NCBI RefSeq assembly: GCF_963921235.1
Contig: NC_086128.1
Coordinates: 33,728,001 to 33,792,000 of the forward strand
Source of the DNA: Mobula hypostoma
Lineage: Eukaryota
Direction: 5' to 3'
Length of the DNA stretch: 64,000 bases
Shown: positions 40,069 through 60,914 of the stretch, in pieces
Numbering within the stretch: the first letter of the stretch is position 1
Layout: each line of letters starts with the position of its first letter
The notes under the pieces: generated by a model
Seen by the model: the letters and a program-made list of their open reading frames with translations, nothing else
What the model was told of the DNA's origin: nothing
The model's database searches: none
Translations under genes and position numbers: made by a program

Positions 40069-43000
40069 GGTCAGTATTCATGTAATATGCTGTCTCCTGC
40101 TTTATTCACATGCACTGAAGTATTCACTAGAACTTCCAGCTTTTAAGGTGTAAGCAATGGATCTGCCACCACATTCAAGCTTTTGTTTGTTTTCTCTCTC
40201 CTCCAGATTTGAACTGAAACAAATGAGCAGCCCTGCCCTTTCTTTCCAACCACTACCCAGCAGAAATTCACTTTTCACTTGCCAGTTGCAAATTTTGCTC
40301 ACATTTGATCATTGAATTATTATAGTAAACATTTGTTCTATACTGTATTACACAATGCAGCTAGAAAGTGCAAAATGTGATTATAAGCCCTTTGCATTTC
40401 ACAGAAGTCTCATGGTGTATTTCCCTGCTAAGATTTGAAACAGGCAACTATTTTCACCAGCACCAATTGTTTTTGGCCAGTCAATATTGACATAATTGTT
40501 AGAAACAAGGCCCCTCAAGTCCAGTATTTTAAGACACCTAACAAAATCACTCGAAGTAAACCTTGCACTGAAGTTGAACAACAATTTTAATCAGATATTA
40601 AGTCTTTGAGTTTGATGACAATCTAATAGTTTCAGTGTCCATTACTAATAGTATGTTCATTTAACCAAATTCAAATTCCAATTCCTCAGCTGCCATGGTG
40701 AATTCATTCTCTAGTCTCTGAATCATTAGCCTTTGCTTGTCCAGTAATTTAACCACTTCCTTATATGACAATCAGTACAAATGATTCGTCAGTTAATATT
40801 GCTTTTTTAAAATTGAGTTGGAACTGTTAGCTCTGTGGACAGAGTAATCCATTTTTATGTCTGTACGCTTAAATCGTGACTCTGGCAAATCTGTCTGGCT
40901 ATTGGGATTCTAAATGGAACAAAGTTGGGCAGGTCCAACCCAATTCTAACTGGGCATGCTTCAGCAGTTCAGAATTGGCTTCTGCAGATTTACTTGAGAC
41001 TACAAGACATTTTGTGAATCTAAATCATTCGCAATGAAATTAAGGTATGTTGGGGCACCATAGAACTTTCCTACAGCTGGTTTTATATTTGCAAACATAC
41101 ATTATACTGGCACAAAGATTTTGTGCTTTATTATGAATAAAGTTGATTGTTTAAATGAATAAAAATATTTAATTACCTCCCCCAAATAACATTATCCTGT
41201 CTTTGACGATTACAAAATTGATTACCTTGTCCTACAAAACTGGCTAAATGTGATAAAACCTAATGATAAAATCATAATCTTGTTAGTATTCTACCATTTC
41301 TAAATCTAATACAGCACAACATTTCATCTAGCTTCTTTCAAATAGGTTAAGAGTTAACATTATATTAGGCAAAAAGTTAACATATTAGGCAACAGCAAAG
41401 CCAATCAAAAAGATGCATTTGAATGAATTGTAAGAGACAAGGGCTTGACACCGTGAACAACAGCAGGTTTTATAAGTACGTGATAACATGACATGATAGA
41501 GAATATGCTGGCTTAAATTGCAGACTTTACAATATAAAAGTGATGTTAATAGCTAGCCATGTAATCCTAAACTCCTCTATTATGGTGGCTTGGCTAATAT
41601 ATCGATCTCTGAGTCAGCAAGTTATTGGTAAAGTTTTCAGGTCAAGGATCAAAGCAAGTTTTTCAGTGCAATACTGAAGCATTATGATGTTACGAGAGAT
41701 GTTATTAAAGGATTATTATGCTATAAGAGGTACGAATAAACTGATCCCCATTCACTTACTGTGAAAGTAGTGTTTGACTGGAAGTATTCAAGATTCAAAA
41801 TTGTTTAATGTCATTTTCAGTACACAAGTGTAAAGCAGAACAAAATAATTGTTCTGAATCTGATGCAGCACAAAAAAACAAAGATAAAATAATAATAATA
41901 AAAATCACAAATACATAAAATGTCTTGTATACATAGACAATATGTCCATAAAGTGATGCTAGGCACATGAATGTCTGTACAAAAGGTGACTGATAGGAAA
42001 TGATAAAGTAGTGGTGGTTGGCAGTGTAGTGGAGTGGGTTAGTGGGTGGAGGTGTTGATCAGCCTTACTACTTGGGGAAGCTAACTGTTTCTGAGTCTGG
42101 TGTTCTGGCGCGGATGCTACGCTTTCAGGAATCTCTTAAAGCCACAAATGAACAGGACACCCTGCTGCTGAGGTTGGGAGAAGGAGAAAGAGGAAAGTCT
42201 GAAGGATCAGCTGTGGCAGAGGTTTTTGGGTAAGAGAGACCAAGCACTTGGAAGAAGAAGCTGGATTTGAAGCTAGCCATGGATTATGCAGCTCAGGACC
42301 AGAGCAGGCACAGATATGGCTGTGAGTGCCAAGGTTCCCATAGGACCAATTGGAATACAATGACATGGTGATTAACCTACTGGATAGTAAGCTAGTTAGT
42401 GTCTAACCAGGTGCACTTTTTAATGTGTGGGTGAATATCCTGTAGTTTAACTTGTAGTGAAGGAGTCCAAAACACCTGGATTGCGTTGATAAGAGCAGAT
42501 CAGACCTGGTCTGGCTTATAGTACAAACAATGTCAGATTCCCAGCAAAGTATTTGATTCTTAACTGCCCTATGAAGTAATCCAGAAAGCTGATCAGTTGA
42601 AATAAATGGTATGGCTTGAATATTTTTTAGTTTTAACTGATAATAGGAAACAAAATGCTCTCAAAAACCAGGTTAGATTTTTTTATAGTGGTAAACAAAC
42701 CTATTTGATTCATAAGCAAAATGAACAAATTTGACGATATGTATTTTGTGTTTTGTCTCATTAAGCAGTCTCTAGTAATTTTGGTTGGCAGGGACACCCA
42801 ACTGAAAAGGATAACCATCCTGTTTAAGTTGAATAATTTAGAATAATATTATCAGAGACATTGGTATTGTACATGTGAACAATAGAGCTCAGAGTCTTTA
42901 GTTTAAGGAAGCACTGTAAACACCTCCCCTGTCAGCATATGTATCATCAGTAATTCCTGTTTCAAAAGCGGAAATGTCACTAATCTTGGTAACAACACCG

Positions 43001-44195
43001 ACATCACTGTATTACCAAGTTTGCTGGTTTACATAACACATTAAAAAAAAAGTGATGAACCCTAAACAGTTTCTGCTCATCAACAATTTAATTCTCTTAA
43101 AGACACCTAACATAGTCAAGCCATGGACTACTGTGCATAACCTCTCGAACTCAGAGATAGTTTATTGTCAATTTCAGGCTTGGTTTAGAAGAATGCAACA
43201 TTATTTTTTACAATGATTCTACATTTATAACAGTGATTCTTATCTTTTACTGTATTTGGGATACTATATATGATGTGTTACAGTAATAGATGATATTTTA
43301 CAGTAAAGAAATTTTCCTTACTAATTATATCCATAATGCCTCTTATAGGAAACCATATACTTTACTAATAACCTTCATAGCGTCAACTGCTCTTTTTTAC
43401 ATGGTCTGGTTTACATACAAGGCGTTGTATGAAATAATCCAGCATGCCATTTCAAGAATGGGAATAAAGAACGTTTGGGCTTGAATTTTTCAGTCAGTTT
43501 TAACCATTAATAATGGGAAAAATGTTCTCAAAGACCTGGTTGGAATTTTTTAAATAGCAATGAGCTATGTTTATAATATTTGGAATCAGAGTCATAAAAA
43601 GATACAGTGTGAAAACAGGCCCTTCAGCTCACCAAGACCATGTTGGCCATCAAGACTTCATATTTTATACTAATCCTACCCTAATCCATTTTAGTTTCCC
43701 ATATTTACCATAAACTACCCTGACCTCACAGATTCACCTACTAACAGTAGCCAATTAACCTATCTGTGTGCATGTCTTTGGCATGCAGCATGAAACCAGA
43801 GCATTCAGAGGAAACTCATGTGGTTTACAGGGAGAATGTGCAAACTCTGCACAGCACCAGAGGTCAGGATTGAATCTGGGTCACTGGAACAGTTAGGCAG
43901 CTGCTCTACGAGCTACTCCACTGTGCTGTAATGTTAACGATACCTTAATCAACTGACCTTCAAATTGCATTGTTCAGTTTGTAGATGTATAGTAGAATAG
44001 CCAATAATGAAATAAAATACCCAGCATGTCAAGTAGTATCCATGGAGGGAGAAACAGATAATGTTTCAGGTTGATAAACTTTCATCAGAACAAGGATAAG
44101 ATAGAGAGCAGGCACTTTCTAAAATGCAGAAAAAGGAGAGGAGTGGAGGGAAGAAAAGGGAATATCTGCATTGGCGTGGAGCCCATGAGAGATTG

Positions 44196-45612
44196 AATCA
44201 GAATCAGGTTTAATATCCCTGGCATATGCCATGAAATTTGTTAACTTAGTGACAGCAGTACAATGCAATACGTGATAAATATAGGAAAAATAAATCAATT
44301 ACAGCAAGTATATATGTATATTAAATAGTTAAATTAAAAATAGTTGTGCAAAAACAAATTATAAATAGTGAGGTAGTGTTCATGGGTTCAATGTCCATTT
44401 AGGAATCGGATGGCAGAGGGGAAGAAGCTGTTCCTGAATCGCTGAGTGCGTGCCTTCAGGCTTCTGTATCTCCTTCCTGATGGTAACAGTGAGAAGAGGG
44501 CATCTCCTGGGTGGTGGGGGTCCTTAATAATGGACGCTGCCTTTCTGAGACCCTGTTCCTTGAAGATGTCTTGTTTACCATGGTGGCTAGTGCCCCTGAT
44601 GGCGCTGACTAATTTCAATCCATGTGCAGCAGCACCACCCCCACCCCTGTCCCCCATACCAGCCAGTGATGCAATCAATCAAAATGCTCTCTGCAGTACA
44701 TCTGCAGATATTTTTGAGTGTTTTAGTTGACAAAACAAATCTCCTCAAACTCCAAATGAAATATAGCCACTATCATGCCTTCTTTATAGCTGCATCGATA
44801 TGTTGGGACCAAGTTAAACCCTCAGAGATCTTGACATCCAGGAACTTGAAAATGCTCACTTTCTCCACTCCTGATCGCTCTGTGAGAATTGGTTCATGAT
44901 CCCTCGTCTTGCCCTTTCTGGTCCATAACTGGTTCTTTGGTTTTACTGATGTTGAATGCCAGGTTGTTGCTGTGACACCACTCCACTAGTTGGCATATCT
45001 CACTCCTGTACGCCCTCTCATCACCACTTGAGATTCTACCAACAATGATTGTATCATCAGCAAATTTATAGATGGTATTTGAGCTATGCCTAGCCACACA
45101 GTCATGGGTATATAGAGAGTAGAGCAGTGGGCTAAGCACCCCTGAGGTGCGCCAGTGTTGATCGTCAATGAGAAGGAGATGTTATCACCAATCCGCACAG
45201 ATTATGGTCTTCAGGATAGGAAGCCGAGGATCCAATTGCAGATGGAGGTACAGAGGCCCAGGTTCTGCAACTTCTCAATCGTGATTGTGGGAATGATGGT
45301 ATTAAATGCTGAGCTATAGTCGAGGAACAGCATCCTGACATAGGTGTTTGTGTTGTCCAGATGGTCTAAAGCCATGTGAAGAGCCATTGAGATTGCATCT
45401 GCTGTTGACCTATTGTGGTGATAGGCAAATTGCAGTGGGTCCAGGTCCTTGCTGAGACAGGAGTTCAGTCTAGTCATAACCAACCTCTCAAAGCATTTCA
45501 TCACTGTCGATGTGAGTGCTACCAGACAATAGTCATTAAGGCAGCCCACATTATTCTTATTAGGCACTGGTATAATTGTTGCCTTTTTTGAAGCAAGTGG
45601 GAACTTCGCCCA
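44196..45612 (-). mobile_element. Rex1/Babar-type LINE, 5'-truncated (copy R1)
   Basis: RT ORFs 45211-45567 and 44894-45139 (LSPLLYSLYTHDC, KFADDT) and C-terminal ORF 44388-44678; tail gaatcagaatcagg. Confidence 0.9.
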
Positions 45613-46444
45613 CTTGGAATAGCTGTCACATGTACATCATGCAGCACCTGTTTATACATTGATGGTCTTGCACAAATGTTGATAATATTGAGTCGAATGA
45701 TCGTAGAATAGTACAAACCCTTTAAACTACTTCAAGGCCAGTCTAACCCTTCCCTCCTACACAGTCCTCCATTTTTCTTTCATCTGTGTGCCTATCTAAG
45801 AGTCTCTTAAACATCCCTAGTCTATCTGCCTCTACCGCCACTCCCGGCAGCATGTTCCACACACGCACCTCTGTTTTTTAAAAAAACAAGCAACCTCTGG
45901 TATTCCCCCCCCCCGCCATACTTCCCTCTAATCATCAATATGACCTCTTGTATTAACCATTTCTGCCCTGGGAAAAAGGCACTGGCTGTCCACTCTCTGC
46001 CTCTTATCATCTTATACACCTCTATCAAGTCACCTTTTGCTTCAAAATAGAAAAACCCTAGATGATACCATTTATTTGAGTGTCTGAATCAAGAGATTTT
46101 TTTCAGTCAGAGGACGCTATAATGGTAAATTAGGTGGTGGTGGGTTTGTGTTTTTTGATGGATTTGGTAAGAAGACGGAGGAGCCACCTTCTTGGATAGT
46201 CAGATAAGGCCTGTATTTAATGTCTCGTGACATAAACACAGTCAATAGATGAAATGCTGCAGTAGTCCTGGGAGGGGCACCCAATTTTGTTCACACCGTA
46301 GGGCAGTGATACTGAGCAAACTAGGTGTGGGCCACATCTGTGATGTGGCAAAGATGTGCTCTAGAAATAGCCACACCTCAGAGTAGCTACAGCACTGACA
46401 TCTGTGTTTGCCCCCTAAAAAACACAATCAGGAAACATCCTATC

Positions 46445-47605
46445 AGCAAGGCATTTGATAAGGTACCCCATGCAAGGCTTATTGAGAAAGTAAGGAGGCA
46501 TGGGATCCAAGGGGACATTGCTTTGTGGATTCAGAACTGGCTTGCCCACAGAAGGCAAAGAGTGGTTGTGGACAGGTCATATTCTGCATGGAGGTCGGTG
46601 ACCAGTGGTGTGCCTCAGGGATCTGTTCTGGGACCCTTTACTCTTTGTGATTTTTATAAATGACCTGGATGAAGAAGTGGAAGGATGGGTTAGTAAGTTT
46701 GCTGATGACACAAAGGTTGGAGGTGTTGTAGATAGTGTGGAGGGCTGTCAGAGGTTACAGCAGGACATTGATAGGATGCAAAACTGGGCCAAGAAGTGGC
46801 AGAGGGAGTTCAACCCAGATAGCTGTGAGGTGGTCCAATTTGATAGGTCAGATATGATGGCAGAATATAGTATTAATGGTAAGAATCTTGGCAGTGTGGA
46901 GGATCAGAGGGATCTTGGGGTCCGAGTCCAAAGGACGCTCAAAGTAGCTGCACAGGTTGACTCTGTGATAAAGAACACATACGGTGTATTGGCCCTCATC
47001 AATCGTGGAATTGAATTTAGGAGCCGAAAGGTAATGTTGCAGCTATATAGGACCCTGGTCAGACCCTACTTGGAGTACTGTGCTCAGTTCTAGTTGCCTC
47101 ACTACAGGAAGGATGTGGAAACCATAGAAAGGGTGCAGAGGAGATTTACAAGGATGTTGCCTGGATTGGGGGGCATGTGTTATGAAGACAGGTTGAGTGA
47201 ACTCAGCCTTTTCTCCTTGGAGCGACAGAGGGTGGGAGGTGACCTGATGGAGGTATTTAAGATGATGAGAGGCATTGATCGTGTGGATAGTCAGAGGCTT
47301 TTTCCCAGGGCTGAAATGGCTGCCACAAGAGGGCACAGGTTTAAGGTGCTGGGGAGTAGGTACAGAGGAGATGTCAGGGGTAAGTTTTTACACATAGAGA
47401 GTGGTGAGTGCGTGGAATGGGCTGCCGGCAACGGTGGTGGAGGCGGATACGATAGGATCTTTTAAGAGACTTTTGGATAGGTGCATGGAGCTTAGAAAAA
47501 TAGAGGGCTATGGGTAAGCCTAGTAATTTCTAAGGTAGGGACATGTTCAGCACAACTTTGTGGGCCTAAGGGCCTGTATTGTGCTGTAGGTTTTCTATGT
47601 TTCTA
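46445..47605 (+). mobile_element. CR1/HER1-type LINE RT and 3' end
   Basis: KAFDKVPH, SGVPQGSVLGP, KFADDTK, RPYLEYCAQF; frameshift and stop. Confidence 0.92.
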
Positions 47606-47852
47606 ATAGTGTCCTCTGGTCACTAGTTAAGTGATTAAAAATGTCCTCAACACCTACAGTCAAGCAATTAATCACCTCCCTCATGTAAGAAGCAAAAGGC
47701 TTGATGGAATTCTTTCCACTGTCCTTGATGGGTTCAGCCTCAATAATGCTGAAGCTCAACACCAAGGCTTGGTAGTGTAACACCATTACAGTGCTAGTGA
47801 CTTGGGTTCAATTTCCACTGCTCTCTGTAAGGAATTTGTACATTCTCTACAT

Positions 47853-48298
47853 TACATAGAAACATAGAAAATAGGTGCAGGAGTAGGCCATTCGGCCCTT
47901 CGAGCCTGCACCGCCATTTATTATGATCATAGCTGATCATCCAACTCAGAACCCCGCCCCAGCCTTCCCCTGACCCCCGTAGCCACAAGGGCCATATCTA
48001 ACTCCCTCTTAAATATAGCCAATGAACTGGCCTCAACAGTTTCCTGTGGCAGAGAATTCCACAGATTCACCACTCTCTGTGTGAAGAAGTTTTTCCTAAT
48101 CTCGGTCCTAAAAGGCTTCCCCTCTATCCTCAAACTGTGGCCCCTTGTTCTGGACTTCCCCAACATCGGGAACAATCTTCCTGCATCTAGCCTGTCCAAT
48201 CCCTTTAGGATTTTATACGTTTCAATCAGATCCCCCCTCAATCTTCTAAATTCCAACGAGTACAAGCCCAGTTCATCCAGTCTTTCTTCATATGAAAG
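47853..48298 (-). mobile_element. Young CR1 3' end nested in a SINE (about 47770-48510)
   Basis: ORF 47927-48265 YSLEFRRLRGDLIETYKIL...; catagaaa tail repeats; SINE head to the left and SINE body to the right. Confidence 0.85.
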
Positions 48299-48799
48299 TC
48301 CATGTGGGTCTCCTCTGGTTTCTCAGATTTCCCACATTCCAAAGACGTATGGGTTAGGGTCGTAAGCTGTGCGCATACTACTTTGGCGCCGGACACATGG
48401 CGACACTTGCGGCTGCCACCAACACATCCTTGAACTCTATTGGTCAGTGATGCAAATGACATATTTCACTACAAGTGTTGATATACAGGTGACAAATAAA
48501 GCTACTATTTAATCTTCATCATCCAGGGCAAGGCAACCTGTTAGCTCGTGATGGGCCAAACTAATCTTCTGCATGTTGTATTTTTTTTTAAAAAGCAAGT
48601 CATTGAGATAGCACCTTGCACGTTCCTTTCAGGACATCAGTGGGTGTCCTGCACTTAGAAATATAGTCACTTGTCATTTAAGACTCCCTGAAGTAAATGT
48701 GATCCAAAGATGTCAGTTACAGTAGTATATCAGGAAAGAAAAGTTTCAATTAATGAAGGTGGAGGTCATGATAAGTAACCATATGTGTACCTTTTTTAG

Positions 48800-49219
48800 G
48801 TTGTTGAACGATCCCTTTCAAAATCCTTTGTCCTGAAGGTTTCAGCATTGTTTGTCACACCCAGAACAGCGGGAGCCCGTGTTTTGATGGACGAGCACCA
48901 GAAGCAGCTCTGGCCTGAAGAAGAAGAGCACGAAGGTGCAGGTAGTTGTGGAGATGAGAAGGCACTGCCACGTGGCAGCAGATCCCACATCACATTGGCA
49001 TGTGCTCCTGGAGTGCAGGCTGTTCAGACCGGAATCGATCTGCTCAGTATCTTGAAGATCGAGGAAGAAAAACCCAACCCTGAATTTCACATCACGTTGG
49101 AAGAAGGTCAACTTTTGGGCTTAGGTCAAGGGGTGTGGATCGTCAACCTGCCCAAACCAATTGAAGTTAACACCATTTTCTCTGGGTTTTATGCAAAAAA
49201 GGAATCCACCAATGAATGA
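48800..49219 (+). CDS. CNP: CNP-like phosphodiesterase, terminal coding exon (located upstream of the earlier exons)
   Basis: cttttttag|GTT, phase 0: VVERSLSKSFVLKVSALFVTPRTAGARV...LPRGSRSHITL...VQAVQTGIDLL...IFSGFYAKKESTNE*. Contains the second 2H motif HITL and is collinear with the vertebrate CNP C-terminus. Orthologue versus paralogue is uncertain. Confidence 0.9.
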   Translation, partial: VVERSLSKSFVLKVSALFVTPRTAGARVLMDEHQKQLWPEEEEHEGAGSCGDEKALPRGSRSHITLACAPGVQAVQTGIDLLSILKIEEEKPNPEFHITLEEGQLLGLGQGVWIVNLPKPIEVNTIFSGFYAKKESTNE

Positions 49220-50046
49220 AAGAATGTTTTAAAAACAAATTCCTCGTGTTGACAATTTTTACTTAGTTATGAGGCACAAAACTTTCAAATAGTTAAAATC
49301 TGTGGTACATTTGATGTAATCTCTTCCAAACACAGTATGGGGAATCTTGTTTTAAACTGTTGGGCTAGACTTTTCTATTTTCGTCTAAAATTGTTCTGTA
49401 ATTGCAATATTCTGGTAAGCCATTTGCTTTGCTTTAAGTGTAACCATATGCTTAGGGTATAATTTCACTACCAAGCCAAATCAGCTACCCTGCCAGATCA
49501 GATCCATTGGTGATTTAACCAAGGCAAGGTTACCTTATGGCAAGGCTGCATTTAACTGTTCTGTTGTGGCCTGTTCAAGTTTAGATGACAGTGTAGAGGG
49601 AATTAGAATTTGTTTGTTGTGTAGTGACATAATTTGGGGAAGAATACTGCACAAAACAAAACAATCAGACATAAATCCATGGTAGTGTGAAAGGTAGTCT
49701 GCTGTATTCTGTTGCTGAGGTAGGGTTAGGATACTGTAGGTTGGTTCAAGAACTTGGTGGTTGTAAGAAAGTAGCTGTTCCTCAACCTGCTAGATGTGGG
49801 ACTTCAGGCTTTGTAGCTCCTGCCTGATGGTAGCAGTGAGAAGAATGCATGACCTGGATGGTGGGGATCCTTTGCTCCAAAGAGAACAACTCCAGTATCT
49901 CCAGACCAAATCCTTCATCAATTCTTCCTTCCTGCATTGTAATCAATGTGGTGACCAAAATTGGATGTAATACCAGTAATGGCCTTGCCTTGCTGTCACA
50001 CAGATTCAACGCAACTCCCCTGCTTCTTCACCTATGCCTCATTTTA

Positions 50047-50991
50047 TCAGAATTAGGTTTAATATCACCAGCGTATGCTGTGAAATTTGTTGTCTTTGCG
50101 GTAGCAGCACAATGCAATACATATTAGGAAAAACTGTGAATTACAATAAATATATATATTAAATAGTTAAGTAGTACAAAAATAAAAATTAGTGAGGTAG
50201 TGTCCATTCAGAAATTGGATGGCAGGGGGGAAGAAGGTGTTTCTGAATTTTTGAGTATGTGGCTTCTGGCTTCTGTACTTCCTTCCTGATGGTAACAGTG
50301 AGAAAAAGGCATGACCTCGGTGATGGGGATCCTTAATGATCGATGCCACCTTTTTGAAGCATCGCTCCTTGAAGATGTCCTGGATACTGTGGAGGCTAGT
50401 GCCCATGACTGAGCTGACTAATTTTACAACTTCCTGTAGCTTCTTTCGGTCCTGTGCAGTCATCCCCCTCTTCCCCACTCCTCTCCCTCATACTAGATGG
50501 TGATACAGCTAGTTAGAATACTCTCCAGAGTACATCTGTAGAAATTTGTGAGTGCATTTGGTGACAAAACAAATCTCCTCAAGCTCCTAATGAAATATAG
50601 CCGCTATCATACCTTCTTTGTAGCTGCTTCGATATGTTCGGCCCAGGTTAGATCCTCAGAGATCTTGACATCTAGGAACTTGAAACTGCTCACTCTTTCT
50701 GCTTCTGATCCCTCTATGAAGATTGGTGTGTGATCCCTCATCTTATCTTTTCTCAAGTCCACAATCAGTTCTTTGGTCTTACTGATGTTGAGTGCAAGGT
50801 TGTTGTTGCCTAGCCACACAGTCATGGCTGTAGAGAGAGAGCAGAGCAGTGGGCTAAACACAGATCCTTGAGGTGCAGCAATGTTGATTGTTAGCGAGGT
50901 GGAGATGTTATTTCCAATCTGCACAGATTGTAGTCTCCTGGTGAGGAAGTCAAGGATCCAGTTGCATATGGAGGTACAGAGGCCCAGGTTA
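50047..50991 (-). mobile_element. Rex1/Babar-type LINE fragment (copy R2)
   Basis: ORFs 50167-50478 and 50607-51017; same family as R1 and R3. Confidence 0.88.
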
Positions 50992-51159
50992 TGAACTTCA
51001 GTGCCTTCTAAGCTCAACTAATCATTCTCCCAATGTATCCTTCTGACTTCAAATGTTTGCACAGAATTGGGAATAGCCTTCCTCCCTGAGTAGCATAGCC
51101 GACCATATGTTTACCATCTGCAAGATGCTCTGCTTCAGAAATGTGAGTTGCTCTTGAAA

Positions 51160-51947
51160 TTCATAAAAACATAAGACCACAAGATATAGGGGCAGAATTA
51201 GGCCATTTGGCCCATCAAGTCTGCTCTGCCATTTTATCATGGCTGATCCATTTCCCTCTCAGCCCCAATCTCCTGCCTTCTCCCCATAACCCTTCATGCC
51301 CTGACTAATCAAGAATTTATCAACCTCTGCCTTAAACATACCCAATGACTAGGCCTCCACAGTCAACTCAACATGCAAATTAACCTTTAGAGAATCCTGC
51401 AAGAGGACTCCCAAGTCCCTTTGCACCTCAGATTTGTGAATTTTCTCTCCATGTAGAAAATAGTCCACACCTTTATATCTTCGACCAAGTGCATGACCAT
51501 ACACTTCCTGACACTACCGACACCTGCCGCTTCTTTGCCCATTCTCCTAATCTAAGTCCTTCTGTAGCCTCTCTGCTTCCTCAAGACTACCTGCCCCTCT
51601 ACCTATCTTCATATTGCCCACAAGCCTGGCCACAAAGCTATCAATTTTGTCATCCAAATCATTAACATATAACATAAAAAGTGGTCTCAACGCAGGCCCC
51701 TGTGGAACCCCACTGGAACACCACTGGTCACTGGCAGCCAAGCAGAAAAGGCTCACTTTATTCCCACTTTGCCAGTCAGCCACTGCTTCATCCATACTAG
51801 AATCTTTCCTGTAATACCATGGGCTTGTAGCTTGTTAAAGAGCCTCATGTGTGGCACCTTGTCAAAGGCCTTCTGAAAATACAAGTATACAACATCAACC
51901 AGTTCTCCTTTGTCTATCCTGCTTGTTATGTTTTCAAAGAATTCCAA
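51160..51947 (-). mobile_element. CR1-type LINE fragments
   Basis: VDVVYLYFQKAFDKVPH and SGVPQGP motifs. Confidence 0.85.
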
Positions 51948-52310
51948 ATTCAGGTTCAGATTTATTTGTCACATGTACTTCGAAATACAGTGAAATGTGT
52001 CATTTGCGCTAACAATACACCCTAAGGATGTGCTGGGGGCAGTCTACAAATATCGCCACACATTCTCGCGCCAATATAGCATGCCTGCAATGCTCAACAA
52101 AACTACACAAGCAACAATAATAATAATAACAACAAAACAACAGCAAACAAACCCCTTTCCCACCCGCACACACACACAGAAGGCGTCCAATTCCAGGACA
52201 GGCCACCTCTGGGCCTCCAGTCCTTGGCATATAAAGGAGAGTTTGAACTTGGCATTCCCACTTTTTCTCACTTGTTTCCATTTCTTTTTTAGATCAGAAG
52301 CTTATTCAGA

Positions 52311-52935
52311 ATGGGCGGAAAAACATCCAAGACTAAGCCTGTGCCATACACCAGTTTCCCTTTCCTTGATGACAGCGATACCATAGAAGCAATCAAAGCA
52401 GTTCACTCCCTCTTCATTCTGCGTGGCCTTCCAGGCAGCGGGAAGTCTACCATTGCCAAAAAAATCACAGAAAAATATTCGGGGATCTCTGCTGTCGCTT
52501 CTGCTGATGACTTCGAGCTCATTCCCCAGGTGGATGAATCTGAGGCAGACCGTAGTAGGTACGACAGGTTGGACCAGAAAATCCATCAGTGGTTTGAAGA
52601 AGATAAGAAGGTCCTTGTGGTTGATGACACCCATCATGATTTGAAACGCCTGGACTATCTCTTTGATCTTGCCAGAGACAAGGACTACATTGTCTTCATT
52701 GTTAACTGTAGAATGGAGGAGAGCAACAACTTCCAGCTTCTGGTCAAAAACAGCCACTGGAAATTCTCTGTGGAGATGATGGAACAGCTGGAGCCAATTT
52801 TGAAGAAGAACATAATCCCATACTACTTTGGTTGGTTCTTGGTGAAAGAGGATGGGGAGAAGATGCGCAGAATTGCAATGCAATTCCTGGATCAGCTCAG
52901 CAAAAATGAGACATTTCTGAAAGAGTTTGTAAAAT
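52311..52935 (+). CDS. CNP: CNP-like, large exon encoding the N-terminal polynucleotide-kinase-like domain (exon starts at 52293)
   Basis: FPFLDD...LFILRGLPGSGKST (P-loop)...VVDDTHH...PYYFGWFL. Acceptor tttttag at 52292, strong Kozak agaATGg, phase-1 donor AAAT|gtatat. Confidence 0.92.
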
Positions 52936-53517
52936 GTATATAGTTTTTTTTGTTATTGAATATTTTTTTGGTGTTGGGATGGGCTGGACCTTTGTCTCAC
53001 AGGCACAGTCCTGGCTGATTTAATTCCACTGAAAGTTTTTTGCAGTGCCTGAAGCACTGCTTTATATATTGTAATCCAGTGACCAGCCTCTTCCTGAAGG
53101 CTGAGGCAGGGTTACGAGGTCAGAGCAGCTGTCCAGAGTGTCTCCATCCTCTGTTGGCAAGCTGTAGAGACATCACAACACTGCCTATTGCAGTCCTCAA
53201 CCAACCTACTGAACACAAACAGCAGGGAAAGTCAATGCTAGCTTGATAAGAATGGATTGGAGTGGATGAGCCTTTAAATGCATATGCGATAAATAAACGA
53301 TAAAATTTGAGATATCTGCAGCTGTGAGATGGCCTTTCAGCTCATTACATCAATGCCAGCCAATCACCAAAAATAAAAATAAAGCAAAAAAGCCCAGGTA
53401 GATTGAACTAGGCAGAAAAACAGGTTGGCAAGGACTTGATGGGACGAAGGGTGTGCTTCTGTGCTGTAGTGCTCTATGACTCTTGGCTGTGCATTAAATG
53501 TATTTTGTTTACTGCAG

Positions 53518-53651
53518 ATGTGGAATGGGACTCCAGCAAGGATTTCAACCTGCAGGAGTATTTCCAGAAGACCCCCAGGATGTTGCATTGTACCACAAAG
53601 TTCTGCAACTATGGAAAGGTTCCAAATTGTGAATCTTATGCTGAGGCCAAG
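53518..53651 (+). CDS. CNP: CNP-like, middle coding exon with the first 2H motif
   Basis: ctgcag|AT GTG: (Y)VEWDSSKDFNLQEYFQKTPRMLHCTTKFCNYGKVPNCESYAEAK|gttagt; phase 1 in, phase 0 out. Confidence 0.92.
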
Positions 53652-54504
53652 GTTAGTAACTGGCTCTTCAATTGCAACTTATTGTTAGAATACAAATTGA
53701 CTAGAAGTTCAAGCTCATTGCCATGAGTGAACGTACCCAGGGTATAATGCCATAAAAATTAGCCTTTTGCAGCAGCAGCACAGTGCGTTACAAATATAAA
53801 TCATACAAATTTAAATTAACAAATTATATGTAGCTTACACAACACAGTAAACAAAAACAACAATAACATTCAAACAAGTTGGGGAAAATATAGTCTGAGG
53901 TTTTTTCACGTCAGCTCAAGAATCTGATGGCACTGGGGAGAAAACTGGGGCTTCAGGCTCTTGTACTTCCTGCCTGATGGCAACAATGAGGAGGTGACAT
54001 GGCCTGATTTGGTGGGGCTCCTTAATGATTGCTGTTGCCTTCCTGATACATTGCCTCTTGTCGACGACCTCAATGGTGGGGAGAGCGGTACTCATGAAAG
54101 AATTGGCAGAACCTACCACGCTGTAGTCTATTGTGTTCCTGTGCATTGGAGTTTCCATACCAGGCCTCAATGCAACCGGTCAGAACTGTATGTATGTACA
54201 ATTTGTCAGTCATCGATAGCAGACCAAACTTCCCTAACCTTCTAACAAAGCAGAGACACTGGTGAGGTTCTCCCTGGTAGGTTCCAGTACAAGCTGCGCT
54301 AAGAATCCATCTCGGAGGCACGCCACAAACTCCCTTATCCGGATTATTTCAGAAGGTTATCCTTCCAGCTCCAGAGTGTTTATTCTGCATGCTAAGGTTC
54401 TATTTCTCAGGGAGAGTGGGGTGGTGGGGGTGGGGGTGGAGAGAGAGAGAATTAATCTAAATCTGTAGGATTACTTTTGTAGGGCTTTGAAGGAGGTGCA
54501 AAGT

Positions 54505-56200
54505 GAATCAGAATCAGGTTTATTATCACCGGCATGTGACGTGAAATTTGTTAACTTAGCAGCAGTTCAATGCAATACATAATATAGCAGAGAAAAAAAT
54601 AAACAAGTAAATCAATTACAGTATACGTATATTGAATAGTTTTTAAAGTGCAAGAACAGAAATACTGAATATTAAAAAAAAGTGAGGTAGTGTCCAAGGG
54701 TTCAATGCCCATTTAGGAACCGGATGGCAGAGGGAAGAAGCTATTCCTGAATCACTGAGTGTGTGCCTTCAGGCTTCTGTACCTCCTTCCTGATGGTAAC
54801 AGTGACAAAAGGGTATGCCCTGGGTGCTGGAGGTCCTTAATAATGGACACTGCCTTTCTGAGACACCACTCCCTGAAGATGTCCTGGGTAATTAGTAGGC
54901 TAGAACCCAAAATGGAGCTGACTAGATTTATAACCCTCTGCAGCTTCTTTCGGTCCTGTGCAGTAGCCCCTCCATACCAGTCAGTGATGCAGCCTGTCAG
55001 AACGCTCTCCACAGTACAACTATAGAAGTTTTTGAGTGTATTTGTTGACATACCAAATCACTTCAAACTCCTAATAAAGTATAGCCGCTGTCTTGCCTTC
55101 TTTATAACTACATCAATATGTTGGGCAACATACATCAAAGTTGCTGGTGAACGCAGCAGGCCAGGCAGCATCTATAGGAAGAGGCGCAGTCGACGTTTCA
55201 GGCCGAGACCCTTCGTCAGGACTAACTTCCTGACGAAGGGTCTCGGCCTGAAACGTCGACTGCGCCTCTTCCTGTAGATGCTGCCTGGCCTGCTGCGTTC
55301 ACCAGCAACTTTGATGTATGTTGCTTGAATTTCCAGCATCTGCAGAATTCCTGTTGTTTGCATCAATATGTTGGGACCAGGTTAGATTCTCAGAAATCTT
55401 GACACCCAGGAACTTGAAACTGCTCACTCTCTCCACTTCTGATCCCTCTATGAGGATTGGTATGTGTTCCTTCGTCTTACCCTTCCTGAAGTCCACAGTC
55501 AGCTCTTTCATCTTACTGACATTGAGTGTCAGGTTGTTACTGTGGCACCACTCCACTAGCTGGCATATCTCACTCCTGTACGCCCTCTCCTCACCATCTG
55601 AGATTCTACCAACAATGGTTGTATCATCAGCAAATTTATAGATGGTATTTGAGCTATGCCTGGCCACACAGTCATGGGTATAGAGAGTGTAGAGCAGTGG
55701 GCTAAGCACACACCCCTGAGGTGCGCCAGTGTTGATTGTCAGCGAGGTGGAGATGTTATTTCCAATACGCACAGATTGTGGTCTTCCGGTTAGAAAGTTG
55801 AGGATCCAGTTGCAGATGGAGGTACAGAGGCCCAGGTTCTGTAGTTTGTTGATCAGGACTGTGGGAATGATGGTGTTAAATGTTGAACTATAGTCAATAA
55901 ACAGCATCCTGACATAGGTAATAGTATTGTCCAGGTGATTTAAGGCCACATGAAGAGCCATTGAGATTGCGTTTGCCTTAGACCTATGTGGCGATAGGCA
56001 AATTGCAGTGGGTCCAGGTCCTTGCTGAGGCAAAATTTGATTCTAGCCATGACCAACCTCTCAAAGCATTTCATCACTGTCGATGTGAGTGCTACCGGGT
56101 GATAGTCATTAAGGCAGCTCGCATTATTATTCTTAGGCATTGGTATAATTGTTGCCTTTTTGAAGCAAGTGGAAACTTCCAGACGTAGCAGTGGGAGATT
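54505..56200 (-). mobile_element. Rex1/Babar-type LINE, 5'-truncated (copy R3), with a nested Penelope palindrome
   Basis: 244-aa RT ORF 55299-56033 ([27 protein letters not shown]); same tail and nearly the same 5' end as R1. Confidence 0.92.
55126..55360. mobile_element. Penelope-derived palindromic insertion with two hammerhead cores
   Basis: About 96-bp inverted arms (1 mismatch seen) around a 6-nt loop; perfect 15-bp TSD catcaatatgttggg (55111-55125, 55361-55375). Confidence 0.85.
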
Positions 56201-56789
56201 TCAGAACCTTACCAGGTACTTCATCGGGAATGACGCAAATGATGTGGTGGGTGGAGAAGGCGTGCAAAGTTTAGCCAAATTGTCTGGAGGAGGTGTAAAT
56301 AGAAGGAGAAGAATCTGTATGGAGGAGAAAGTTGTTAAAAATACTGCATCTATGAGGTACAGAACATTGTTGGGAATCTGAAATAATGCTGGAAATACTC
56401 AGGCAGGTCTGCATCTGCAGAGAAAGACTGAATTATTGTAATGCTAGCTGACTTTACATTAAAACTGACCATTTTTAACACAAACTGGAAAGGTTAGTTA
56501 TCTAAGATTGTTGAATATAATGTGAGTCCTCGAGAGAGGTGAAAGTAAACCACCGCAGGACAGTACAGAGTTATGGTAAACAAGTGATCAAAAATGTGCC
56601 TTTATCACACGTGGTTGACTTACTTCTTTGCTCTGTTTTTGACGTTTGTGGGCTAATACAGTAATTAGTGAAGTGTTTCAGAAAATACAGAACAATGACA
56701 ACTATGATGGGGAAAAACATCAACAGCTGTTAGAACATTTAATGCATAAGAATTATCTTAATATGTTAGTTATTGCAGAAATTTAAAGT

Positions 56790-57530: not shown

Positions 57531-58643
57531 TGAAGTATCTAAGCATTGAAACTACCATATTTTAATAACAAAATTAAAACAAACAGTAAGAAAGAATTAG
57601 TATCAAGTGGATAAGCAGCACTCGTTTCCCAGGGCAGCCATAGCCATAACAAGAATATGATATTTTCAGGTAAGTGGAGTAAGGTTTAGGAGAGAGGTAG
57701 TCTTTTTAAAACATGGAGATTGGTAGGTGCCTGGATACCACTGCTGGGGGTAGTGGTAGATACAACAGGGACGTTTAAGGGTCTCTTAGATAGGAACATG
57801 GATGTAAATGTCCTGATAAAGTGTCTCGTTCTGAAACGTCAACAGTTTACTCATTTCCACATAGCTGCTGCCTGGCCTGCTGAGTTCCTCAAGCATTTTG
57901 CGTGTGTTACTTGGATTTCCAGCATCTTTATATTTTCTCTTGTAGGGTTTTTGGGTTGTGTAGGAGGGAAGGGTTAGAGTGATAGCTCATACTGTGCTGT
58001 ACTCCGTTCTTATTAAATCAGACATCCCACCCTGCAAAAACTCATTTCAGGGAGATAGCACCACCATTTCATGGAGGTAGCAACTCCCCCCCCCCCCCCC
58101 AGTCGACCTCCAAGGGCGCATGTATACTGGACATTTGATTATGAAAGAACACAACAATTTATTTGACACATATTGAAACTATTTATACACACACACACAT
58201 ATATATATATTCCTTGTTGAGTATTTTGTTGGCAATCTCAATGCTAATGCAAATAGCTTTTATATTTCTTTCGCAAACTTTCCTTGTACTGTTATGTGGC
58301 TCTGCTGAAAAGAACTGTGAAATACTTGAGCAGCCTTCCGAGATTAGCCTCCCTAATATGTCGTGGTCCCTAAAAGAAATAAAAGCATGAGGTGTACCCT
58401 TATTATATTGTCTTATGTAATACTTTGTTTAGTGATTTGTCTAATTTGTAAACCAATCTGTAACCTGTAAACTGCGTATATGCAGAAAATGTAACATTAA
58501 AATACAGTATGTACTTATATATTATCATGGAGTCGTTTCTTAATTCTATTACAACTTCAAGCAAGTCTACAGGGAGTTTGGCCTCATCACGTAGGACATC
58601 AATAGAGTAGCTCCTTAGCAGCTAACCAGCTCGTTTAAATAAC

Positions 58644-58949
58644 ACACATCAAAGTTGCTGGTGAACACAGCAGGCCAAGCAGCATCTATAGGAAGAGGCG
58701 CAGTCGACGTTTCAGGCCGAGACCCTTCGTCAGGACTAACTGAAGGAAGAGTGAGTAAGGGATTTCCTCCAGCTTCCTCCAGCTTTCAAATCCCTTACTC
58801 ACTCTTCCTTCAGTTAGTCCTGACGAAGGGTCTCGGCCTGAAACGTCGACTGTACCTCTTCCTAGAGATGCTGCTTGGCCTGCTGCGTTCACCAGCAACT
58901 TTGATGTGTGTTGCTTGAATTTCCAGCATCTGCAGAATTCCTGTTGTTT
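58644..58949. mobile_element. Penelope-derived palindromic insertion with two hammerhead cores
   Basis: About 120-bp inverted arms; perfect 13-bp TSD tcgtttaaataac (58631-58643, 58950-58962). Confidence 0.85.
58816..58851 (+). ncRNA. Minimal type I hammerhead ribozyme motif
   Basis: agtc-CTGACGA-agggtctcggcct-GAAAC-GTC-gact: stem I agtc/gact, conserved core boxes, loopless stem III. A mirror copy lies on the minus strand at 58702-58737. Confidence 0.75.
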
Positions 58950-59851: not shown

Positions 59852-60029
59852 ATGAAAGACACCACGGGAAAGCACAAACCCAAGGAGCCCACCTCCGAGA
59901 AGGTGAAGGCCGCTGGCGGCCTCCCGGCCCTCGATGTGGAGATGAAGGACGTGTCCGCCGAGCCTGATGGCGAGCCGGCCGACAGCGGCGAGAGAAGCCA
60001 GAAGGAGCTGGATCTACTCACATTGGAGG
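59852..60029 (+). CDS. PSMD3: 26S proteasome non-ATPase regulatory subunit 3 (Rpn3), first coding exon; gene continues beyond the window
   Basis: MK...LDVEMKD...ERSQKELDLLTLE matches the PSMD3 N-terminus (DVEMKE...SQRELDTVTLEDIK). Phase-1 donor GAG G|gtaaaa; lies in a CpG island; syntenic with ORMDL3. Confidence 0.9.
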
Positions 60030-60914
60030 GTAAAATCCGGCTCTAGTGACGGACTATCCAGTGCTGGGAGCCGGGGCCATTGAAATACCCGGAACAGGGC
60101 GTTTGGTGAAAGGGATAGATCTAGTGAGTGAGAGGGAGGGGGTCAGGTCACTTAGTGACTGGGATCATTTTGATAAGCAGGCGGAGTAGGTCACTTAAAG
60201 AGACTTAGCATTATTATCCAACACAAGTCTGAATTATTTCTACTCTGAAGTAACAAAGTAGATAGGTATATGGAGGAATTTAAGGTGGGGGGGTTATATG
60301 GGAGGCAGGGTTTGAGGGTCGGCACAACATTGTGGGCCGAAGGGCCTGTACTGTGTTGTACTGTTTTATGTTCTAAATCTTTCGTCATTGGGTGGCTGGG
60401 AGCAGTATTCTACGTGGACAATCACTTTGGGGAATGAAACAGGATATTTACAGAGAGGAGAGTATTTAGTGAAAGGAATATAAAGTTATTTTCAAATGTC
60501 TGAATTGCATCTGCACTAAAGTGTCATAGTTCCAATCACTGGGCAATAAAGTTGCCTGTACTGGAATAAATAAGGTTTACTCGTCACTGCGCTGATCTGA
60601 GGCTGTGGCCTGCAACTAATGGGCTCCCAGACCGGCTGCAGTGGTGACCGGCTTAATGGCTGTGAACTTACTTTCATAATCTTTAGTTCTGAATATTAAT
60701 TGCCTTTTTATTGCTTGCACAGTTTTTTTTGCATATAGGGTGTTTGGTCTTTTTTTCATGGGTTCTATTTGCTTTCATTTTTTGTGGCTACCTATAAAGA
60801 GGCGAATCTCAAATTTGTATATAATATACATTGATAATAAATATAGTTTGAACTTTAAACTTCAATTTGGGTAGAGGCATAACAGGTTCCATTAGCTGAA
60901 ACAGTGACAGACTG

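Follow-up and report, generated by a model that had tools for sequence, protein, structure and literature searches.

Segmental duplications that turn a donor order A-B into B-A have been described as products of circular DNA intermediates (Chicote et al. 2020, PMC7450558), and the KIT translocations of cattle colour-sidedness are cited as a precedent for the B-A order (Durkin et al. 2012, Nature 482:81, as cited in PMC12235870). In such cases a collinear donor persists while a distant copy carries rotated blocks, and the copied segments span tens to hundreds of kilobases (kb). Here we describe a 64,000-nucleotide (nt) stretch of the devil ray Mobula hypostoma (contig NC_086128.1, positions 33,728,001 to 33,792,000 of the forward strand; hereafter the window), in which the coding exons of CNP, the gene for the 2H phosphoesterase 2',3'-cyclic-nucleotide 3'-phosphodiesterase, stand in permuted order. 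The window very probably holds a young, partial, rotated duplicate of CNP between ORMDL3 and PSMD3, with the enzyme and the mRNA made by a parent gene elsewhere. Compared with the circular-intermediate precedents, the copy is small (a few kb to at most ~18 kb) and lies within a single gene, so that its exons are scrambled; on a circular origin its outer ends would be expected to abut in the donor.

All three exons lie on the + strand. The last coding exon (48800-49219; acceptor ttttttag, 139 codons plus a TGA stop at 49217-49219, motif SHITL) comes first in the window, followed by the first coding exon (52293-52935; acceptor ttttttag, donor gtatat, ATG at 52311, P-loop GLPGSGKS and the start of the CNPase domain), intron 1 (52936-53517, bounded by GT and AG), and the middle coding exon (53518-53651; acceptor ctgcag, donor gttagt, first catalytic motif HCTT). 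Put together as first, middle, and last, they form 625+134+420 = 1179 nt with an open frame of 392 amino acids that contains GLPGSGKS, HCTT, and SHITL. The sequence-only reading had reported this exon order, the splice sites, and the frame, and we re-derived all of them. The first, middle, and last exons match positions 1-38, 47-85, and 88-219 of Pfam CNPase (PF05881), respectively, with E values from 8e-7 to 6e-42, the last exon giving the 6e-42 match. The domain is thus split once over three exons, and the pieces amount to one gene's worth, each present once. A tblastn search of the 64-kb window with the joined protein found no further copy of any CNP exon at E values up to 10 and no other match at all at E<1, in agreement with the earlier claim that no second last exon lies between 53651 and PSMD3 and no second copy of the others between ORMDL3 and 48800; the window has 0 runs of N. 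The flanking genes are both confirmed by annotation, with ORMDL3 exons at ~26.5 and 35.6 kb and PSMD3 exon 1 at 59852-60046.

The active site of the 2H fold requires two H-x-T motifs, a single one being insufficient. Both motifs (HCTT and SHITL) are intact in the window, yet they cannot be joined there by linear splicing, and the earlier conclusion that linear cis-splicing of this layout gives no enzyme stands. The acceptor at 52292/52293 implies an upstream exon, exon 0, and its coding letters are absent from the window; there is also no AATAAA or ATTAAA poly(A) signal between the CNP stop codon and position 50000. A functional gene would have its own first exon and promoter and its own 3' end, and the window copy has neither.

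The sequence-only reading had taken this locus for the animal's CNP gene, a premise that falls with the presence of an intact collinear CNP on the same chromosome record. Two NCBI CNP models of M. hypostoma (GCA_963921235.1) lie on one 73,079,903-bp record: XP_062893895.1 (P0001), which spans the window exons, and XP_062894108.1 (P0153, 406 amino acids), which consists of MQRGICSAIRSLFR followed by exactly the 392 amino acids joined from the window. The protein of the last exon is 100% identical to residues 268-406 of XP_062894108.1, and across the acceptor of the first coding exon this product reads MQRGICSA-IRSLFR-MGGK. It is the only product in which HCTT and SHITL occur on one polypeptide. 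The P0153 gene is collinear and 30,510 bp long, and a DnaJ/TPR (DNAJC7-like) gene on the other strand follows 6.5 kb beyond it. CNP also lies beside a DNAJC7-like gene in Hemitrygon akajei (33.3 kb) and Mobula birostris (29.0 kb), and human CNP likewise has DNAJC7 as its neighbour. A protein search with a full-length ray CNP found collinear full-length models in more than 12 other sharks and rays. A search of the protein database with the open reading frame products of the last exon, aimed at parent DNA contigs, gave no matches. It is this intact, collinear gene that supplies both enzyme and mRNA.

RNA runs containing the first coding exon were found, and four were aligned: two from organism A, which is the same species (~99.9% identity), and two from relatives, organisms B and I (~98%). 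One transcript contig per run joins 52935 to 53518 and then goes back 4852 nt, from 53649 to 48798, at depths of 41 to 737. The junction between the middle and last exons, for which a search of RNA had been suggested, is thus present in all four runs, as is the joint across intron 1. The contigs that carry it also carry exon 0. They extend 33 to 160 nt upstream of the acceptor at 52292, where the letters that do not align to the window (...ATGCAACGTGGGATCTGCAGCGC) encode MQRGICSA, the exon 0 of the parent, and they continue 150 to 180 nt past 49621 with a sequence beginning GTAAGTTTCATG... Neither the 3' continuation nor the upstream string occurs anywhere in the window, allowing up to 3 mismatches. 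Three differences further set the RNA apart from the window, one at 49533 (within the 3' untranslated region [UTR]), one at 52850 (GAG to GAA, silent), and a CA run at 52167 that is 2 nt shorter; a contig containing intron 1 stops aligning exactly at 52976, beside the site of an insertion or deletion. Because the RNA carries exon 0, the continuation of the 3' UTR, and alleles that are not those of the window, the mRNA is the parent's, and the parent mRNA explains the backward join without non-linear splicing.

Production by non-linear splicing, one of the explanations offered earlier, is accordingly not upheld. In its specific form, the donor at 53651 would be back-spliced or trans-spliced to the acceptor at 48800, yielding the full CNP frame from the copy itself, and the joint from 53649 to 48798 in every RNA run aligned, together with the intact splice sites of the copy, is what such a process would leave. 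As in exon scrambling, circular RNA formation, and trans-splicing, parent mRNA aligned to the window does give a backward exon join. Those processes are recognised by a backward join that has no collinear DNA template, however, and here a collinear template gene exists, so that the join is an artefact of the rotated copy. The RNA contigs moreover hold sequence found only outside the window and have non-window alleles, and organism B, in whose DNA contigs the permuted junction is absent, shows the joint equally. We regard back- or trans-splicing of the copy as exceedingly improbable.

Logan DNA contigs from organism A, whose one sample is probably that of the assembly, and from organism B were aligned to positions 48300-53900. 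The breakpoint lies at 49621, and M. hypostoma contigs hold both the window continuation and the parental one. Contig 9 of run X24 (1510 nt) equals 48332-49841 with 0 differences and so contains the window junction, whereas contig 1 of run X23 (11,469 nt) equals 48332-49621 with 1 difference and goes on for over 10 kb in DNA that is not in the window. Since a contig built from M. hypostoma reads reproduces the odd junction, the junction is not an invention of the assembly. Misassembly had been among the explanations suggested for the layout; it finds no support as an account of the junction, and what is left of it is a question of placement, taken up below. M. hypostoma likewise has two versions of the block that holds the first and middle exons, one identical to the window (X24 contig 14) and one with 1 single-nucleotide polymorphism and an additional G after 52975 (X23 contig 6), and this G is shared with organism B.

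In organism B, four contigs from the two runs show parental continuations only: 48441-49621 runs into 5.8 to 10 kb of other DNA, and 49626-49850 is preceded by 551 nt of other DNA. The remainder of 49.6-53.9 kb is 98 to 99% identical there in its single-copy pieces, and one contig (X27 contig 24) matches 52199-53900 and then continues. The differences of organism B in the exons (H to C and T to M in EFHITL) match the CNP of M. birostris, and from this likeness organism B, the sister species, is probably M. birostris. The length of a CA-type microsatellite at 52105-52170, upstream of the first coding exon, also varies: RNA and one DNA contig lack 2 nt of it, and organism B has 6 nt more (CACACA).

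The copy is young. It differs from its parent by about 1 difference per kb (~0.1%), and the two Mobula species differ from one another by 1.5 to 2% (24 differences over 1180 nt, 26 over 1703 nt). The divergence between copy and parent lies far below that between the species, so the event is much younger than the species split, in agreement with the absence of the window junction from the organism B contigs. The intact reading frames are accounted for by how recent the copy is and not by selection.

The extent of the copied DNA can be followed on both sides of the exons. Upstream of the last exon, 48332-48799 is the copied tail of intron 2, which X23 contig 1 matches from 48332 with its 1 difference, placing the left border at or before 48332. 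Downstream of the stop codon, 49220-49621 is the first 402 nt of the CNP 3' UTR; the RNA contigs cover this stretch and leave the window exactly at 49621. A 4-nt filler, TAGT (49622-49625, with no strand assigned), is crossed by X24 contig 9 with 0 differences. It is followed by 2667 nt of the 3' part of intron 0 (49626-52292, rich in fragments of long interspersed nuclear elements [LINEs]), seen in organism B contigs and, from 51831 on, in contig 18 of RNA run X2, and, after the middle exon, by the copied head of intron 2 (53652-53900), matched by X27 contig 24, with the right border at or after 53900 and before PSMD3 at ~59.8 kb. All of these except the filler are on the + strand.

The copy very probably consists of two donor blocks in rotated order. 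In block B, the last exon is preceded by the end of intron 2 and followed by the 402 nt with which the 3' UTR starts; block A holds the final 2667 nt of intron 0 and runs through the first coding exon, intron 1, and the middle exon into the head of intron 2. B is joined head-on to A through the TAGT filler, and the copy has neither exon 0 with its promoter nor the end of the 3' UTR. We considered and rejected a processed retrocopy, which would lack introns and carry a poly(A) tail, since the window copy retains intron 1 as well as portions of introns 0 and 2, with their splice sites. The suggestion of a recent block transposition was right that the event is recent and block-wise, although the event was duplicative and the parent is retained elsewhere. 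A collapsed tandem array, in contrast, does not fit one unit bounded by ORMDL3 and PSMD3 and a parent gene of normal length.

The B-A order could come from one event, in which a donor segment was circularised, re-opened inside intron 2, and inserted. Alternatively, replicative template switching (microhomology-mediated break-induced replication [MMBIR] or fork stalling and template switching [FoSTeS]) could have produced it; we infer a single-event origin by one or the other. Duplication through a circular intermediate has been described as leaving blocks in B-A order, a junction that lacks long homology, and a collinear donor that survives, as is the case here. As in the described cases, a collinear donor persists elsewhere (the P0153 gene), and the inner junction ties the distal end of the donor to its proximal start with only a short insertion (3' UTR position +402 to intron 0, through TAGT). 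FoSTeS and MMBIR likewise place templated, non-collinear pieces from a distant locus side by side with short fillers or microhomology at the joins; they make no prediction on how the outer ends of the two blocks relate to each other, and the window data fit them equally. Adjacency of the outer ends in donor intron 2 would be expected to separate a circle from template switching. We consider it possible, though on balance somewhat doubtful, that the copy reflects germline re-insertion of a small extrachromosomal circle from within CNP (intron 0 to the 3' UTR), re-opened in intron 2, a few Mb away from its donor. Such a copy, ~0.1% diverged and found in one devil-ray species, may still be polymorphic. 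If the circle is the true origin, this would be among the smallest and youngest natural vertebrate examples of a circular intermediate, with donor and copy both intact.

Several points weigh against a rotated duplicate at this locus. Word depths of the duplicated blocks (8.5 to 11.9 in X23 and 5.1 to 7.1 in X24) show no clear doubling. The placement between ORMDL3 and PSMD3 is given by the assembly alone, and the M. hypostoma DNA contigs support the junction only. That the differing letter in X23 contig 1 and in X23 contig 6 is the allele seen in RNA is a guess. Weak transcription of the copy may also occur, since contigs drop rare variants.

The first two of these points bear on a different account, in which the junction 49621/49626 is real and the block was misplaced or falsely duplicated in the assembly, deriving for example from a rearrangement at the CNP locus or from an extrachromosomal circle. 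LINEs are abundant on either side of the block (44.2-48.3 kb and 53.9-57.4 kb), one M. hypostoma sample was examined, and the lack of a clear depth doubling favours this account. The window is gap-free, however, and repeat-rich flanks of ~6 kb are spanned by ordinary long reads. The LINE copies at 44194-45607, 50046-50808, and 54504-56179 are 3' fragments of one family in the same orientation, and at 71 to 86% alike they are too different to confuse accurate long reads. The parent gene, at 30.5 kb against 29.0 and 33.3 kb in two other rays, holds no extra unit in the assembly. We therefore judge misplacement unlikely and retain the rotated duplicate as the reading of the locus.

Near-identical repeats that misled the assembler were considered separately and rejected, as LINE copies only 71 to 86% alike are not substrates of recent recombination or misassembly. 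In DNA runs from either Mobula species, word depths for this LINE family reach 10^5 to 10^6, and from their divergence we read the three copies as probable unrelated old insertions of a high-copy family.

The remaining explanation concerns the output of the copy rather than its origin. Linear transcription would give a chimeric or truncated protein such as XP_062893895.1, or a P-loop protein with half of the catalytic domain made from an internal start region. The annotation pipeline did build XP_062893895.1 ('CNP-like', 458 amino acids), flanked by ORMDL and PSMD3, as a linear chimera of the window: it links 42114-42230 to 48866-49135 (a portion of the last exon), the first and middle exons, and a final exon at 56163-56378 (model span 42114-56378), and its Pfam order is CNPase, AAA, CNPase. 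In RNA run X2, contig 18 (51831-52935, depth 398) runs unspliced through the 52293 acceptor into the first coding exon. This read-through suggests that 51831-52292 is an internal start region for a short MGGK... isoform of the parent gene; the region, read through at high depth in one tissue, is included in the window copy, and an internal start region may thus have been copied. No RNA joint from 49135 to 52293 or from 53651 to 56163 is among the joints listed, however, RNA depth falls to ~0 beyond 53722, the RNA contigs carry parent alleles, and a product with one H-x-T motif cannot form the 2H active site. The first and last exons of the model also lack homology support. Linear transcription into such a product appears quite improbable, and XP_062893895.1 is a chimeric annotation artefact on a gene fragment, two of its exons being unsupported.

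The permuted CNP exons thus reveal no gene that depends on non-linear splicing, and the result is mainly a correction: parent mRNA aligned to a rotated duplicate imitates back-splicing. The locus is one further case of a known kind of segmental duplication, together with an annotation artefact to be flagged. It is also a clean, very young B-A duplicate that can be used for studying how such copies originate and how they segregate in M. hypostoma.

The exons themselves are those of a vertebrate CNP, encoding the P-loop domain and both H-x-T motifs of the family. The protein that they specify is identical to M. hypostoma CNP, 97% identical to that of M. birostris, and ~42% identical to mammalian CNP; the window copy differs from these in not being a working gene, since its exons are rotated and it has neither exon 0 nor the 3' end. 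Mammalian CNP has a C-terminal CaaX box, whereas the ray protein ends in ...KKESTNE (49196-49219) without one. The ray protein starts MGGKTSK (52311-52331), where Gly2 and Ser6 resemble an N-myristoylation motif; this Gly2 would be masked in the longer isoform X1 (MQRGICSAIRSLFR-M...), which is made from exon 0. Mammalian CNP has two isoforms from two start sites, of which the ray pair is reminiscent.

The window also contains two near-perfect hairpin elements. One, at 55125-55324, has arms of 97 nt that are 99% complementary around a 6-nt loop and interrupts a LINE copy; the other, at 58634-58919, has arms of 132 nt that are 95% complementary around a 22-nt loop. The two share sequence, each translates to ...LVLTKGLGLKRRLRLFL on either strand, and they look like members of a foldback or miniature inverted-repeat transposable element (MITE)-like repeat family.

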